Origin: Amoeboaphelidium protococcarum X5
Lineage: Eukaryota; Fungi; Aphelidiomycota
Assembly (NCBI GenBank): GCA_023515725.1
Contig: JALDTO010000235.1
Location: forward strand, 232,371 to 296,370
Direction: 5' to 3'
DNA: 64,000 nucleotides
Shown: in pieces, positions 54,001-61,950 of the stretch
Position numbering within the stretch: the first letter of the stretch is position 1
Layout of the letters: every line of letters starts with the position of its first letter
Notes under the pieces: generated by a model
Database searches by the model: none
Seen by the model: the letters and a program-made list of their open reading frames with translations, nothing else
What the model was told of the DNA's origin: nothing
Made by a program: the position numbers and the translations under genes

Positions 54001-54124
54001 GTTTAATCAAGAGTCACAAAGCTTCTTTCAGAAAGATGATGGCTAGCAGATGGATGTTGAAAAATTGATACTTGAACAAAAGTTTCACGAACTGGAACTG
54101 CATCGGTCAGGGGATGAGATGTGA
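51030..54124 (+). CDS. CLASP/Stu1-like TOG/HEAT microtubule protein, one intron (~51051-51109)
   Basis: KEDETTWKQFDEAI, LLSDRSKLSGNAC, LLKLCARANKI, HPNKNVR, IADADGGVRDTAK match CLASP-N. Confidence 0.75.
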
Positions 54125-54162
54125 AAATTTTTCAACTTGATATAATGCTCTTATTGTTAAAA

Positions 54163-56845
54163 GTGCAAAGTGCAAAAACGGAAACCGTTAAGGTTGACGT
54201 TGGAAGAATGCGCGAGCGATCGAGCGCGCGACGGTGATCTCGCAGAAAACAGACAAGTCAGTTGTTTCAAACAAATCCTCAATGATTTTGCATTAAACTT
54301 TTTGTATTAAATCCACTTTCAATCTCAGTCTCCATATTATCTGTCTTGTTCAAATACTACACTCATCCATGGTACCAGAGCAATTGTTTGTCTTGAAGCT
54401 AGTTGGTTTGAAGTTCCCCCAATGTGCGATGAACTTATCCAAATCACCGCCAAAGTGCTTTCTCAGACATTTCATGATCGGGCAGTATTGCTTCACGTAG
54501 AATGATTTGGCGCCAGCTGATAACCCGACGGTTGAGCCAGGATCATCCACTGCAAGAATGGCCTCCAACTTCGCCATGGCAGTCTTCGCTTTTCTCACTT
54601 TCTCTCTCCCAGGCATATCATTCACAACTTCATCCTACTGAACAGCTGTGATGGCAGGTACAACATCAGCTACGTCAGTGTCTTCTTCATCGGATTCATA
54701 GAGTTCATCATCAGAGTGAACCGCAGCTTGTTCACGTAACTATCTGGAAGAAGATTATTGAGAAGTCAGAGTAGATTTTGGCTACTTCAACTTAGCTGAT
54801 TGAGTGGCAGCAATCAATCCATTCGCATAAAGCTCAAGCATCCTACGCAGCTCATTAATCTCCTCCGGAGTGGCATTAGGTGCAATTTCTTTCAACTTTG
54901 CCTCAATAAGCTGCAGCACAGTCTCTTTCTTCTGCAACTGGAGAAGTGCATCGTAAATCACTCTAGGTCCACCAACTGCATCAACATCAGATAATCCACA
55001 TAAGCTACGAACAATCTCTTGACTCACCTGCTGCAGACAAAAATTGCCTCTAGAATGGGCAGCATTCAGACTGCGAGCCATCTATAGCTACTCACAGTAG
55101 GCTGATCTGAATTTGCTTACCACGGAAGACACGTCCAAACGTCTAGTCTTCGCTAATTCTAGCAAATAGCTAGCATCCTTCTTATACAATGCGGCATTAG
55201 CGGACGAAGCGTGTCGCGCACTCTTAGTGATGTCAATCTCTGATCCCATTCCCCAAACAGCAAGCAAATAGCCAGTCTTCCTACTAGTGTGCGTACCAAA
55301 TTTACCATCGGGATTGCCGGTAGCAATCTTACAAGCTTTCTGATACTGCCTATGATAAGATACGTAAGAGATGTTGTACGCCGCATGCCCAACTTGCTTC
55401 ACAGCATCCAGTGTACTCTCTTGAGGGAACAAGAATCCAGTTCTAATCCCAGAAATAAAAATCCACGTCAAAAGCGCACGAACCGGGCACAATTCGGGCA
55501 CATCATAATCCGTCCAAAGAGTCAAGCACACTCTAACACGATCAGACTTGCCTTTAATGTAGAAAGCAAGGGAAGATATACTGCCATCACTTTGAAAGGT
55601 CGCAAGATCCTTGTTGAGACAATTTTCCAGCCTAGGATCATGAATTTTCAAATCGGTGACTTCATCATTGCGCAGAAATAGCTTGATACTAACGATAATC
55701 ATCGTCCACATCATGAATGACTTCGCATCATTTTTCGAGATGAAATACTCGCGGAGACGTAGTAATTCCCAAGGTGTGAGCGGCTAGCTGCCTTCGGACA
55801 CGTAGCTGCATCCATCGCGGGAGTTCAATCTCTACATGTTAGTCATGAGGGAAGAATTCTTTGGATCTCCACCCAGCCAAATACGAGGAGCCATCGGATG
55901 GAACCGACAGCCAGATCTATCACCACGCTCAGAACGTTGGATGCACTCTTCGCAGATATCTCTGTACTCCCCCCTCTAATTACGACTATCATGCAGCACA
56001 GAGACAGCCGATAACAACTGGTCAACATTCTGTGGCATATTCCAACCACCCTAGCACTTGATATCGTGCCCATAGACACATTTCACAGCGTTGCCATTCT
56101 CGTCTTTTAGCAAAGAACCCTTCTCATTACGCTTGAACTTGATAAACAAAATGATGCTCTTGGCGTTCATTGACGGTGTGTACTGCGGGGGGTTAGGAAG
56201 CAGCATTAAACTCGAGCTGTAGTCACCAATTAGCGCAAAAAAGTACCGCAATCCTCTGTAATGCTTCTAGTAGGCTTACATACTATTCACAGCCAAAGGC
56301 CTACCGCCAGTGAGTGGCACAGATACGTCGGATCGAGTCAACCTCAGCAGCTTCAACGTCTCTCCAATGCCTTCATCCAGCTTATACTTGTACGCCGCTT
56401 CAATGCGATACACATGGCTGTTCTCCGACTTCTTGCGTCTCTTCACCTTCTTCGCCAACTGCTCATCATCCAGACCATCATCAGAGTCGTAATCGTCGTC
56501 GTCATCTTCATCTTCATTCTCCAGCTACCTATTGAAAGCAGCACTGACTTGAGCAGAACTTTGTGAAGTGATATCAGCAGTTTGATTCATGCTAACAACA
56601 CTTGTTTCAGCCTCGCACCCAGCCAGACCAGAACTTGAGGAGGCGGATACGCCGACACTACTGCCAACACCAGCACACTCATCAACGGCTGGGATGCCAG
56701 TACTACTGTTGGAGGTGGTGATACCACCTCCAGATGGCTACGAGTCACTCTACACTGCTCTAGAACGCTTCCTGCCAGACATGCGAGACGGTCGAGATTG
56801 TAACAAAGCGAGTTCGGTGCGTTTCTCCGGGTGCAAGGTGCAAAA
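54163..56845 (-). mobile_element. Crypton-like tyrosine-recombinase DNA element flanked by 15-bp near-perfect direct repeats
   Basis: gtgcaaagtgcaaaa (54163-54177) and gtgcaaggtgcaaaa (56831-56845) bracket a single YR ORF; no RT present. Confidence 0.6.
54350..56782 (-). CDS. Tyrosine recombinase, 810 aa, apparently intact
   Basis: LFLRNDE (R), IKGKSD (K), CPVRAL, GTHTSRKTG (HxxR), SARH...ALYKKDA (H, Y); five track ORFs share one frame. Confidence 0.85.
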
Positions 56846-56896
56846 CACTACCGGTGCAAAAGAAAACAAGCGTTTTATTTGTTTTAAAAGAGTCAG

Positions 56897-56938
56897 ATAC
56901 AATATCTTACTGATACTAACATTTTATTAATTCTTACA
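56897..56938 (+). repeat. 5' LTR remnant (last 42 bp)
   Basis: atacaatatcttactgatactaacattttattaattcttaca is identical to the 3' LTR end. Confidence 0.9.
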
Positions 56939-56949
56939 TTTTATCCTCA
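56939..56949 (+). promoter_or_regulatory. PBS position, complementary to the element's own LTR (putative self-priming site)
   Basis: ttttatcctca is the reverse complement of tgaggataaaa at 61899-61909; no TGG tRNA-type PBS. Confidence 0.7.
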
Positions 56950-56959
56950 GTATTTCATC

Positions 56960-59900
56960 ATGGCTCAAGATTATGATGGTGTTAAATTTAATGGAAATAA
57001 CTTGCTATCGTGGGATAATTCTCTGAAGATCAATGCAAACGCTCGTAACCTTACAGCTATAATGACTGAAAAGGGATGTAAGCAGTTGAAATAGCTTATG
57101 ACTCCTCAGTAGATAATCGATGCCAAATTGAAGTGTTTCAACAAGTATGGAAAGAGAATTGATAAGAAAGGGAAGAAGAAGAAGGTGAAGCGTATGTTTA
57201 GCAAGGAATATGAACAGATGGTTGATAAACTGCATGAGCAGAATAGTGCTGCTTTGTCCCTGGTTCAGAAATCAGTAGAGTCACGCTTCGTATTTCACGT
57301 CCTAGATTGTGTATACGCGTTCGATGCGATCGAATAGATTAAAAAGTTCTGGAATCAGAACTCTACGGAGCATATTCTCGAACTTCGCGATGAGATCCGC
57401 ACTCTGCCATTTGCAGATGATTCGGTGACGTTCATGTAACGTCTCAAGCAACTTGTGGCTCAGCTAAATGATCTCGGAGATAAAACGTACACTTTGGAAA
57501 CGCTGCCCAGCCTGGTGATTGAGAGATTGCCAGATACTGCTGATTATAGTGATCTGAAATCATTGTTGAACATCAACTCTACTGTGAGTGGTAAATCATA
57601 CACTACTGAATAGTTTACGCGAGTTCTCACTCTGCATGAGTCTAAGCTGGTTCGTACAAAATCTTTAAAGGCTCAAAATCTTAAAGTGGTAGAGGCGCGT
57701 GAACCATCTGCTGTGAATTCTGAGTTGATGTAGCTGGCCACGGCTGCGGCGGCTGCAGCCATTGAAAAAGAGAAGAAGACCTCTCCGGTTGCAGGAGTCA
57801 AGAGAAGCTTTGATAAAGTTGCCTATGGAGATAAATGCTCTAACTGTGGTGCTAAAGGTCATGCTATTGAAAGCTGTTGGTATGATGGAGGCGGTGGCGT
57901 GAGTAAAAGACCACCCGGGTGGCAAAAGGAGAACCCCTATCGTTCCAAGCAAAGATCCAAGATCACGGCAGTAATGGCGAAGATTATTTCTTGTGCCACA
58001 GCGTTGGATATTCAAGCGGACTCAATGTCATGGGTATGTGACAGTGGCTCCACGGCGTTTGTCACGTGCAGAAAGGACTGGCTGATTGACTACGTCGAGG
58101 AGCCTGGTTTGTGTCGCACCGCCGATGCCGCAAATCGGGTGGCTATCGTCGGAAAGGGACGAATGTTCTTCGAGTACGACGTAGCCAATAATAAGAGTTA
58201 TGTCATGGCGTCCGAGGTTTGGTACAGCCCAATGTTTGGGTATAACCTCTTCCCCGTGAATAAGTTCAGTAAGTCTAAGGAAATGTCCGCCCTCTTTAAT
58301 AATGGCTAGGTGGTGGTGAAGAATTAGAATGAAATCATCGCTACAGGTGAATTGCAGGCTAATGGAGATATGGAGGACCTTTTTGTGATGGATATTAAGG
58401 TAGTACCGCCCGTTGAAGTGGCACGTTTGGGTCTTATGGATTAATTTACTTAAGAATCTGAGCCGAAAGTATTAGCCGCGGCGCCTATCTCTGTCCTTGA
58501 GCTGCATGAGTTACTTGGTCATTCTAATCCATGACTTTTGAAGGAGTTGATCAAGAATGGTGTCTTGGGAATTGATATTGAAGAGAATGAAAATGACTAT
58601 GAGAAAATAAAGTCATGTAATCCATGCATTTAAGCCAAATCCACTCGCGCATCCTTCTCTCGCAGTCAAGACTTCTATTAATCGGATGGGACATTGTTGC
58701 TTAGGTCAGGACGTGTTTTAGAATTAGTTCACATGGATCTCATCGGGCCCATCGGAGTGTAAACGCCATCCAAGTAAAACTATATACTCACAATTGTAGA
58801 TGACTACTCCGGTTACTGCTGGGCAGGTCTCCTACATTCCAAGGATGAAGCAATGAGTACTTTTGAGAATGTGTATAGTCGGATGAGGGTGGAAACTGAC
58901 TAACGCATTAATACGATTCGCTGCGACCAAGGTGGTGAATTTATTTCCAATGAGTTTCTCAGACGATGTCTTTAGAATGGTATTCTGCTCCATCTAGTGC
59001 CTCGATATACTCCTCAGCTCAATGGTGTCGTTGAGCGGTACAATCGGCGCATAGTCGAAGGTGTTACAGCTATGTTACTAAGCTGCTCACTTGCCAGAAC
59101 ATATTGGGGATATGCAGTTGAGACCTTTGTGCACGTGGCTAATCGTACCTACACTAAAGCCAGAAATAAAGCAGGAGTTGCTCATGTTAGCCCATATGAG
59201 GTATATCATGGTAAAGCACCATCGTATGATCATCTACGCAGGTGGGGAAGCAAAGTTGCATATTTCATTCCCAAACAGGCAAGAAAGGACTCATTCAAAT
59301 TCTCTTCCAAAGTAGGATTCGGGCATTTTCTTGGATATGCGACTGGTGGCTACTTTGTACTGACTGAGTCTAGAGCAATAATCGTTGTGCCTTGGGATGA
59401 GGTGAAGTTTCTTACAGATAATGAGACACTTGTGTCGCCTGAACGATAGGCTGAGATTGATGCGCTGTGGAATGACATTCGTGATTAGTCCCTTGGTGAG
59501 CCATAGACTGGTGGCTATGGATTAGGCGAAAGCACAGAGTCTACTACATTGGGCGAAAGATAAGGATTAGAGCAATGTAGTAATGAGCATGTTAATGAGA
59601 TAGATGGAGAGTTATCAACAAGTCTGGAGCATTTGTAATAGATTTAACCAGGACCGAACGGTAGAGAGAGTACTAAGCTGCTTACTACCAGGGAAGAATT
59701 AGAGCAGAGTTTAGAGAATGAGTTAAGCGCTTAAAGCGTTTAAGATGAGGGGAGTGAAAGTAATCAGAATGTAATGATTACGCATGAGGTGGATAATTTG
59801 CACGACGTTGATGAGAGAGTGTTATCGTCTGAGTCGAATTACGGAAGTCCGGTTGAAGAGGAGGAAATGTCGAAACTGTAGGAGAGCAGTAAGGACAGTT

Positions 59901-61780
59901 TAGAGTATGAGTTGAGAGACATTAAGGTGTCTAGGAGGTTGCGGCGTTTAGCTAAATAGCTCCATATTGATATGAATGGTAACACACCAATGATGAGCTT
60001 ACTTGCGCTAGTGCTGTAAAAGAATACAGTTTAGCAGTAAAAGCTTGATGACACTATTATTGAATACTTGATTGACGATGTATTGAAGGACCTCGCAAAC
60101 GTTGAAGCTGATGAGTGTAAGGTAACATCGTGTTTTAGTAGTTTAGTGGGAATGGTGCAGGACATGCCAAAAACACCGAAGAGTATTAAGGAGGCTATGG
60201 TGTTGCCAGAATGGCCGTTGTGGAAATAGGCTATTGCAGATGAGCTGGCAAGTCTCATTAAGAATTGCACTTGGAAAAGGATGCCTCTGCCGAAGGATAA
60301 GAAAGCGCTCCCTTGTAGGTGGATCTTCAAGATCAAACTGAAGTCCGATGGATCCATTGAACGATACAAGGCGAGGTTGGTGATTCAAGGATTTCGTCAA
60401 GTTAAAGGAGTTGACTACTCTGAAACGTTTGCGCCAGTGGCTAAGTTCAATACGATCAGACTGGTCATTGCTCTGGCAGCTTATCTAAATTTAGAGATTC
60501 ACCAGATGGATGTAAGCACTGCGTTCTTAAACGGACTATTGGAAGATGAGGTTTATATGAAGGGACCTGAAGGGACTGAATTTGAGGGATAAGTCTTGAG
60601 GCTGCTGAGAAGTCTTTATGGTTTAAAGCAAGCGCCTAAATGTTGGAACAGCACTTTGAATAAGTATTTGCGAAAGATTGGATTTCGACGCTGTCGGGCT
60701 GATAATTGTTTATATATCAGATCCAGTGGTGGGTTTCTCTCACTAATTGTAGTCTATGTGGATGATCTACTGATAATTGACCAGGACATTGAATAAATTA
60801 ACAGAATCAAAAAGGAGCTTTCTGATCAGTTTGACATGAAAGACCTGGGAGAGACTGAACATATCGTCGGGATCAAGGTGTCACGCAATCGTTCTAAGAA
60901 GCTTATTAGTCTTGACTAACAGTCTTACTTATAGAGAGTATTGGAAAAGTTTGGCATGGATGGTTGCAAAAGTGTCAGTACTCCATTTGTTGAATCCGCT
61001 GATAAGCAAACCCATTAAGCTCAAGCAGATGTAAATCAGTATCCTTATAGAGCGGTTGTTGGGAGCCTGATGTATTTGATGGTTGGGACGCGTCCTGATA
61101 TCGCGTTTGCCGTGAGTTAATTGAGTCGGGATTTGGAGAAGCCAACCGCGAAATCGGTTGTCGCAGCTAATCGTGTGTTGAGGTATTTGAGTGGTACTCG
61201 CAGTTACTCGTTGATTTATGATGGTCGTTCTGATCTCATGCCGGTAGCATATGCTGACGCTGATTATGCTAATGATAAATTGACCAGAAGATCAACTACC
61301 GGGTATGTTATTGTAATGTGCGGAGCTGCAATTATCTGGAAATCTAAAGGTTAAGCATAAGTGGCATTGAGCTCAACAGAGGCTGAATACTATGCAGCGG
61401 CTGCGGTGTGTTAAGAGATATGTTGGATGCAAGAGCTTATGTCTGAGATTTACATCAATGTTAAAAGTCGTGGCACTTTATTAAATGAGTTGTAAAAATC
61501 GCTGGAGGTAATTGCGACTCATCCAATGACTCTGATGGAGGATAACTAAAGTTGTATTAAAATTTGCAAGAATCCTGAACACTTTGGTAGGACTAAGCAT
61601 ATTGAAGTCAGGTATTTCTTTGTAAGAGAGTTAACTGAGAGTGGTAGGGTAATTCTTTAGTATGTATCGACTAACGATTAGCTAGCAGATTTACTCACGA
61701 AACCGTTACCAGTTGGAGTCACTGAGCGGCTGATTAGTGGGCTTGGATTGAGAGATTCGAAGTCTATAGAGAATGAGTGA
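56960..61780 (+). CDS. Copia Gag-Pol polyprotein, single frame with one internal TGA (58532-58534)
   Basis: CSNCGAKGHAIESC knuckle, WVCDSGST, VHMDLIGP/IRCDQGGEF/NGVVERYN, YKARLV, LYGLKQAP, YVDDLL, ADADYA, SSTEAEY, EDNQS, RTKHI. Confidence 0.93.
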
Positions 61781-61800
61781 GATCCGACAGTAGGCGAAAG

Positions 61801-61950
61801 TGTGAGAGTGTACTGAAACGGATCGTCTAAGGTTGAAAAATGATCAAAAATATCATGATTATGAGTGATAGATCTCAAAGGTGATATCTCTTCACCTTTG
61901 AGGATAAAATACAATATCTTACTGATACTAACATTTTATTAATTCTTACA
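61801..61950 (+). repeat. 3' LTR, 150 bp
   Basis: Starts TGT directly after the PPT agtaggcgaaag and ends ACA; contains an 11-bp hairpin at 61874-61902. Confidence 0.8.

Follow-up and report, generated by a model that had tools for sequence, protein, structure and literature searches.

A clade of Ty1/copia retrotransposons in Amoeboaphelidium protococcarum and metagenomes with predicted Tf1-like self-priming

Half-tRNA-Met molecules are the primers of Drosophila copia, yeast Ty5 and plant Osser, while plant Bianca uses a half-tRNA-Ile with inosine. To our knowledge, self-priming has been demonstrated experimentally only for Tf1, and among copia elements it has so far been a sequence-based prediction in one plant lineage. 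The reverse transcription of Tf1 in S. pombe is self-primed (Lin and Levin 1997; Butler et al. 2001; both as cited in PMC6317226). For the plant TAR lineage of copia elements, which includes Houba and Osr-1, Neumann et al. (2019) predicted self-priming in 89 % of 203 elements (PMC6317226); for these two families, the same paper credits the proposal to Capy (2005). In fungal GalEa copia elements, Donnart et al. (2017) described a 'conserved hairpin site' in place of a primer-binding site (PMC5445492). The initial annotation of the locus described below proposed a self-priming copia lineage and knew of no description of self-priming for Ty1/copia. Covariation in eight families, the lack of a match among the scored tRNA genes and a tRNA control strongly support such a lineage, but the claim of novelty fails, given the earlier prediction for TAR (PMC6317226). 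The aphelid clade is a new probable case of self-priming, not a new principle.

The element in question (family F1) occupies positions 56897-61950 (+) of the window, by which we mean the whole 64,000-nt stretch that was analysed from the genome of Amoeboaphelidium protococcarum, a parasite of algae. Its 3′ LTR is complete (61801-61950, +; 150 bp, TGTGAGAG..TTACA), with boundaries set from solo LTRs and from the second copy on contigs C169/C134, and its ends have the TG..CA form (TGTGAG..TTACA). This LTR is adjoined by the polypurine tract GTAGGCGAAAG (61790-61800, +); similar tracts, of the form (A)GGCG(A/G)AAG, also precede the LTR in families F3, F4, L080 and L084. The 5′ LTR is represented only by its last 42 bp (56897-56938, +), which are 100 % identical to 61909-61950. 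Because of this truncation, the target-site duplication of the window copy is unreadable; 5-bp duplications are seen in the sister families F2 (ATGCA) and F6 (GGGTA).

The gag-PR-INT-RT-RH polyprotein is encoded by one ORF (56960-61780, +) when translated in code 6, with TAA/TAG read as Gln. In the host, A. protococcarum, both TAA and TAG encode Gln, and the abundant TAA/TAG codons of the ORF are not decay. The otherwise open frame contains a single internal TGA at 58532-58534. Pfam matches include Pol_BBD (57734-58306), an integrase SH3-like domain (58976-59446) and RVT_2 (60230-60793; 248 bits), so that the integrase precedes the RT; Retrotran_gag_2, rve and RVT_2 are all present in full-length relatives. 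The gag-PR-INT-RT-RH order, the TG..CA LTRs, the polypurine tract and the 5-bp duplications of the sister families are those of Ty1/copia (Pseudoviridae), and with integrase upstream of an RVT_2-type RT, the copia placement in the initial annotation holds. The Tf1/sushi lineage (Ty3/gypsy chromoviruses), in contrast, has the order RT-RH-INT and a chromodomain integrase. The window element, though predicted to prime as Tf1 does, thus lies outside the Tf1/sushi lineage.

The LTR ends with ..TTCTTACA at 56938, and the primer-binding site, TTTTATCCTCA (56939-56949, +), starts at the next nucleotide; between it and the gag ATG there are 10 nt. It is exactly complementary to TGAGGATAAAA (61899-61909, +), a putative self-primer whose distance from the 3′ LTR end is 41 nt. 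A C/T-rich tract precedes this segment, which would be the start of R. The coordinates agree with the geometry first proposed for this complement: if the LTR-final A is paired with T61910, the duplex has 12 bp and the loop 39 nt. The LTR end and the presence of TGAGGATAAAA in the 3′ LTR had also been correctly recognized, but the 42-bp 5′ LTR of the window copy itself does not contain TGAGGATAAAA.

By analogy with Tf1, transcription of a complete copy would start at or beside the TGA of TGAGGATAAAA in the 5′ LTR. The first 10-11 nt of the RNA would then fold back over a loop of 39-66 nt onto the site after the LTR, a pairing demonstrated by the covariation described below. A cut past the duplex by the RNase H of the element would free a 3′ OH, from which a minus-strand strong-stop DNA of about 40 nt would be primed; this DNA may in turn be transferred to the copy of R in the 3′ LTR. 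Among public sequencing runs, a search found none recorded as RNA, and the only ones that contain the element (X6-X9) are stored as Logan contigs. These stop at a repeat edge, 30 nt inside the LTR, and so do not inform on transcript starts or ends.

The same layout is found in seven further related families, four from this genome (F2, F3, F4 and F6), one from another strain (F14) and two from metagenome contigs (L080 and L084). At offset 0 past the LTR, each has a site of 9-11 nt that matches an LTR segment 40-66 nt upstream. The primers are TGAGAATAAA, TGAAGTAGAAA, TGAGGATAAAA and TGATCAATAGA in F2, F3, F4 and F6, and TGAGAATAAA, TGACAATAAA and TGCGAATAAA in F14, L080 and L084, respectively. 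Over the eight families there are six distinct site sequences, and each fits its own LTR: covariation links the primer-binding sites of the other seven families to their homologous TG(A/C)N.. segments. The pairing of site and LTR that had been noticed in the window copy is therefore kept among its relatives, with Watson-Crick pairs at positions 2-11 in 8/8 families and compensatory double changes at 7 of these 10 positions (two to four pair types, no broken pairs). Position 1 (T) is unpaired in two of the eight families and a wobble in one, which leaves the exact 5′ end of the primer uncertain. However variable the primers are, a C/T-rich tract followed by T|GA is present in all eight families, and pairing is reliable from the G onwards, two indirect hints of an mRNA start at the primer. 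The LTRs of the clade are very short (120-217 bp), and the loop between primer and site measures 39-66 nt across the families.

Theoretically, so short a match in an AT-rich LTR might be a chance event. In shuffles of the LTR of the window element, however, a complement of at least 11 nt within the first three post-LTR offsets appeared in only 4 of 20000 trials, and for each of five families the observed match length was reached in no more than 20 of 20000 trials (range 0-20). Moreover, the real match is always at offset 0. The shuffles and the compensatory changes refute the chance reading, to which we assign practically no probability.

It may also be asked whether the site is bound by a host tRNA or tRNA half, or by some other host small RNA, and resembles the LTR only incidentally. 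Half-tRNAs are common primers of copia elements and are used within this very genome, where the copia families F7, F8, F11 and F9 carry half-tRNA-Ile or half-tRNA-Met sites. Against this, TGAGGATAAAA occurs at 44 sites in the genome, all outside the 63 tRNA genes that were scored, a partial list drawn from 1171 candidates, while the tRNA-Ile-type site of F7, F8 and F11, used as a positive control, maps to four tRNA genes. The sites of the clade are not of the GGTTATGAGCCC-like type that complements the tRNA-iMet anticodon stem-loop, nor do they complement that of tRNA-Ile, and the LTR segments do not fit the anticodon-loop pattern; the initial annotation was right that TTTTATCCTCA is not of the half-tRNA type. 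Finally, true tRNA-derived sites here are constant across families with unrelated LTRs, whereas the eight families have six site sequences that follow their own LTRs. We therefore regard a tRNA or other small RNA as a very improbable primer. In short, the clade shares with half-tRNA-primed copia elements the superfamily and the position of the site directly after ..ACA, but differs in a site that matches no scored tRNA gene, varies by family and tracks its own LTR.

In an RT-RH tree of 34 rows, all eight families fall into one clade with support 98/96; an earlier RT tree of 11 families was unresolved. Outside this clade, every element of known site type in the RT-RH tree has a half-tRNA site. 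These site-type counts leave aside F5 (no second LTR), F10 (contig too short), F12 (LTR copies only) and L079, L085 and L088 (5′ LTR junction unreadable). The outgroups L076, L086 and L087 carry the half-tRNA-Met site GGTTATGAGCCC, directly after ..ACA. The only grass protein in the tree, from Lolium, is placed outside the clade, and the elements of known site type nearest to the clade are half-tRNA-Met ones. We consider it probable that the clade replaced an ancestral half-tRNA-Met site by a site complementary to its own LTR, and that the element is an intact, recently active copia. Since the nearest neighbours of the clade are non-plant elements with half-tRNA-Met sites, this tree, which holds no confirmed TAR sequence, suggests an origin of self-priming separate from that in plant TAR.

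Could the conserved stem be real without being a primer? It may hide an AAUAAA-like signal in the 5′ copy of the LTR, or act in packaging, dimerisation or translation control, in which case reverse transcription would have another primer. Retroviruses are known to occlude their 5′ poly(A) signal in a hairpin, and AATAAA is found inside five of the eight primers, with ATAAAA in that of F1. On the other hand, F3 and F6 pair perfectly without a canonical AATAAA in the segment, and the complement sits at the exact place of the ancestral half-tRNA-Met site of the outgroups, directly after ..ACA. In addition, all five families of this genome have their gag ATG at 13-49 nt past the LTR, so that hardly any space, if any, is left for a further primer site. 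A stem without any priming function is, in our opinion, unlikely. The two roles, primer on the one hand and poly(A) occlusion or another function of the stem on the other, are not mutually exclusive.

A different possibility is that the same LTR segment primes in trans, supplied by another genome packaged alongside or by a short RNA derived from the LTR. The RNAs of LTR retrotransposons are packaged as dimers, and covariation alone does not distinguish pairing in cis from pairing in trans. Nevertheless, the loop is short and limited in size, 39-66 nt in all eight families, the intramolecular folds are favourable, and cis pairing is the established mechanism for Tf1. Priming in trans thus appears distinctly unlikely. 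For RNAs that begin with the primer, primer and site are paired in the minimum-free-energy fold of all six families tested. Directly upstream of the self-primer, and overlapping it by 1 nt, is a hairpin, AAAGGTGA/TCACCTTT (61877-61899, +), that enters the minimum-free-energy fold only if U3 is included and then competes with the primer/PBS stem; RNAs that include U3 show such competition from an upstream hairpin in both F1 and F3. The stems of F14 and of the aged F4 copy are no more stable than those of shuffled sequence.

Taken as a prediction from sequence, Tf1-like self-priming in this copia clade is well supported: a complement of about 11 nt to the element's own LTR follows the LTR, the pairs change in a compensatory manner, and the 63 scored tRNA genes contain no match. 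In Tf1/sushi elements, likewise, a post-LTR primer-binding site of about 11 nt is complementary to the LTR-derived 5′ RNA of the element and to no tRNA, and the pairing is kept by covariation among related families. However, Tf1/sushi elements belong to Ty3/gypsy, whereas the present clade belongs to Ty1/copia and has LTRs of 120-217 bp and a gap of 40-66 nt between primer and site; moreover, the identity of the primer with the mRNA 5′ end and the RNase H cut are here predictions. The plant TAR lineage is similar in that self-priming of a copia element is predicted from sequence, by computation in both cases, but its hosts are land plants, in contrast to an aphelid (a fungal relative with TAA/TAG = Gln) and the hosts behind the metagenome contigs. 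GalEa elements resemble the clade as non-plant copia elements with no tRNA-type site and a conserved structured sequence at the position of that site. Theirs is a local palindrome and hairpin for which the authors found no LTR complement (PMC5445492), whereas the partner of the clade's site is in the LTR.

A bolder proposal joins three claims. First, the aphelid-associated clade, with its half-tRNA-Met ancestors, would be a third independent origin of self-priming, after Tf1/sushi and TAR. Second, the primer would be the exact 5′ end of the transcript, beginning with the G of the Y-tract-T|GA motif. Third, the primer would in most families double as the poly(A) signal (AAUAAA) of the 3′ LTR. 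We put this combination forward tentatively, as a possibility rather than as the expected outcome. If it is true, one short LTR segment serves as transcription start, primer and polyadenylation signal.

The clade, known from a protist related to fungi and from environmental DNA, offers eight primer/site pairs that differ naturally and whose changes compensate each other perfectly. As its closest relatives are still half-tRNA-primed, it is a clean comparative case for a primer swap in retroelements, and RNAs of 60-90 nt would be compact substrates for an in-vitro test with RT/RNase H. There is also a warning for annotation: site finders based on tRNAs will report no primer-binding site in these intact elements, and ORF finders using the standard code will read them as decayed.

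The window copy keeps only a 42-bp stump of its 5′ LTR, which is abutted and truncated by a putative tyrosine-recombinase element of 2.75 kb (54147-56896, -), with an ORF of about 800 aa in code 6. The name of this element comes from the initial annotation and from an HxxR-like motif seen by eye; three pieces of the ORF gave no match in Pfam. On contig C135, a 99.7 % identical copy of the recombinase element lies between LTR positions 1-110 and 103-150, and the same junctions between this element and the LTR are found in L003, L009, L015 and L018. The truncated 5′ LTR was also considered as a cleavage point of the self-primer, a reading that we reject in favour of an insertion of the recombinase element, as two LTR halves flank the copy of that element on C135. 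Likewise, the left flank of the latter (54040-54146), with one other genomic copy only, is unsupported as another copia LTR. Since the primer segment of its 5′ LTR was lost to the recombinase element, the window copy is probably no longer autonomous. A 100 % identical copia copy on contig C169 has a 5′ LTR that extends upstream through the TGAGGATAAAA segment, and the existence of two 100 % identical copies argues for recent copia activity.

The Ty1/copia element at 56897-61950 (F1) carries, directly after the end of its 5′ LTR (..TTCTTACA, ending at 56938), a putative primer-binding site, TTTTATCCTCA (56939-56949). The exact reverse complement of this site, the segment TGAGGATAAAA, lies inside the LTR at 61899-61909. 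Including the last LTR base, the duplex comprises 12 bp and closes a loop of 39 nt, in agreement with the initial annotation. The full LTR (TGTGAGAG..TTACA, 150 bp, 61801-61950) was delimited by a genome-wide search with the element ends and alignment of all matches, and the polypurine tract GTAGGCGAAAG is located immediately 5′ of it. In the same alignment, several related solo LTRs are 71-87% identical to that of F1, and the TTGAGGATAAAATACAAT stretch is well conserved among them. A second copy (C169, 5049 bp) matches the window copy at 100% identity along the whole contig, which argues for recent activity of F1.

A search of the genome with RVT_2 returned 35 copia reverse-transcriptase domain matches, sorted into more than 10 families, and the 5′ junctions were compared for part of these families. 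The F1 layout is present in F2 (contig C162; site TTTATTCTCA, LTR segment TGAGAATAAA), F3 (C314; TTTCTACTTCA, TGAAGTAGAAA), F4 (C192; TTTTATCCTCG, TGAGGATAAAA) and F6 (C146; TCTATTGATCA, TGATCAATAGA). It is also found in the F14 family of another A. protococcarum strain (L078; TTTATTCTC, GAGAATAAA) and in two metagenome elements with standard-code ORFs, L080 (TTTATTGTC, GACAATAAA) and L084 (TTTATTCGCA, TGCGAATAAA). In all eight families the site stands at offset 0 after ..ACA, with its partner 40-66 nt upstream of the LTR end. Shuffled LTRs matched the observed complement length only 0 to 20 times in 20000 per family, except for the mutated 5′ LTR of an old F4 copy. With the families aligned at the TG, 8/8 have Watson-Crick pairs throughout positions 2-11. 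At seven of these ten positions two to four different pair types occur and no pair is broken, which is the kind of covariation that the initial annotation had proposed to look for. Two families lack a pair at position 1 (T), and one has a wobble there. Separately, C264:1502322-1514110 (L031, L044, L045) contains nested elements, with F2 insertions within an F8 copia element, and one F2 copy in this nest has a mutated site, TTTATTCTCT.

The segment TGAGGATAAAA has 44 copies in the genome, and not one of them is located within the 63 tRNA genes that were scored out of 1171 candidates. As a positive control, F7, F8 and F11 have unrelated LTRs and a common site, CGTTATCAGCACTGC (C264:97275, C98:122797 and C235:124106; L067-L069). 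The complementary sequence carrying a wobble-position A, GTGCTAATAACG, has four genomic copies, all at positions 29-40 of scored tRNA-Ile(AAT) genes (C146:144860, C150:3085, C207:655101 and C212:403762). This makes CGTTATCAGCACTGC a half-tRNA-Ile site in which C faces the wobble A, implying inosine pairing; the same device has been reported for the plant Bianca lineage (PMC6317226). At least four further LTR junctions also have CGTTATCAGCACTGC. The F9 site, GATTATGAGACC, is half-tRNA-Met-like. In this genome, then, tRNA-derived sites stay constant from family to family, whereas the F1-clade sites vary with their own LTR.

In the RT-RH tree (34 rows; IQ-TREE, ultrafast bootstrap and SH-aLRT), all eight self-type families and three families without an assigned site type form one clade (support 98/96). 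Outside it, every element of known site type has a half-tRNA site, namely F7, F8, F9 and the loci L076, L086 and L087, the latter three with GGTTATGAGCCC. This topology fits a single change at the root of the clade, in which a half-tRNA-Met site gave way to a self-complementary one. Given covariation in eight families, no scored tRNA match and a single clade, the self-priming proposed in the initial annotation is well supported for the F1 clade. L080 and L084 are full-length relatives with ORFs of 1485-1497 aa lacking TAA/TAG, and they nest within the aphelid families. This suggests either related hosts with a standard code or element transfer between hosts.

For Tf1, self-priming is established, and for the Tf1/sushi group of gypsy elements it has been inferred. 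The initial annotation knew of no description for Ty1/copia, but self-priming was already predicted for 89% of 203 elements of the plant copia TAR lineage (Neumann et al. 2019, PMC6317226), where Capy 2005 is cited as proposing it for Houba and Osr-1. The fungal GalEa copia elements have no primer-binding site and form a local hairpin that has no partner in the LTR (Donnart et al. 2017, PMC5445492), unlike the F1-clade site with its partner inside the LTR. In the literature searched, we found no paper on aphelid retrotransposons and no description of self-priming in non-plant copia elements. The F1 clade is a new, and probably independent, case of an already predicted mode of copia priming.

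In minimum-free-energy folds of RNA begun at the TG, segment and site are paired with each other in 6/6 families; four of these give z-scores of -2.4 to -4.0, whereas the values for F14 and the decayed F4 copy are weak. When U3 is included, an upstream hairpin in F1 and F3 is predicted to compete with the putative primer. In F1 this hairpin (61877-61899) lies directly upstream of the segment, overlaps it, and wins in such folds. If transcription starts at the segment, the F1/F3 hairpin would exist in the 3′ LTR copy only. The same-placed F3 hairpin (L058/L034), also overlapping the segment, holds in its loop a second near-copy of F3's own primer-binding site (TTTTCTACTT). Segments in all eight families follow a C/T-rich tract and start T|GA. 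This pattern is compatible with an inferred pyrimidine-purine start site and with the loose pairing at position 1. No sequencing run in which the element was found is recorded as RNA, and the four runs compared with it consist of contigs that break off at repeat edges. Because five segments hold AATAAA and that of F1 holds ATAAAA, the segment may double as a poly(A) signal.

With TAA/TAG read as Gln, F1 is one open frame (56960-61780) with a sole internal TGA at 58532. Its stop-free pieces match Pol_BBD, then an integrase SH3-like domain, then RVT_2, which indicates the Ty1/copia order, and its close protein relatives are annotated Amoeboaphelidium protococcarum proteins. The TGA (58532-58534, context TGACTT) separates the protease part from the integrase part of a frame otherwise open over 1606 codons, and is identical in the C169 copy. 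It could be subject to read-through/recoding, or be a defect common to both copies.

The 5′ LTR of the window copy consists of its last 42 bp only (56897-56938). Upstream lies a 2.75-kb minus-strand element (54147-56896; ORF of ~800 aa), labeled a tyrosine recombinase in the initial annotation. The stump was considered as a primer-cleavage product. This was rejected, since a 99.7% identical recombinase element on C135:60455-63361 (L009, L018) is flanked by F1 LTR positions 1-110 and 103-150, and both junctions, left and right, are found again on C179 (L003) and C164 (L015). These data point to truncation by insertion of the element beside ..GGATAAAAT/ACAAT.. In C169, the 5′ LTR extends upstream across the TGAGGATAAAA segment. 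The putative recombinase element sits repeatedly inside F1 LTRs at ..GGATAAAAT/ACAAT.., just past the putative self-primer, which may reflect site-specific LTR targeting or later recombination between copies. In the window, LTR sequence is present only on its right side, and the sequence flanking it on the left (54040-54146) occurs once more in the genome. An isolated 43-bp fragment at C98:1791411-1791453 (L016), without an adjoining recombinase element, corresponds to the terminal 43 bp of the F1 LTR and begins where the window stump does. Finally, in run X9, the word depth is 955 for a contig over 56500-56853 of the recombinase element versus ~20 for the copia body, suggesting either a high copy number or strong expression of the recombinase element in that sample.
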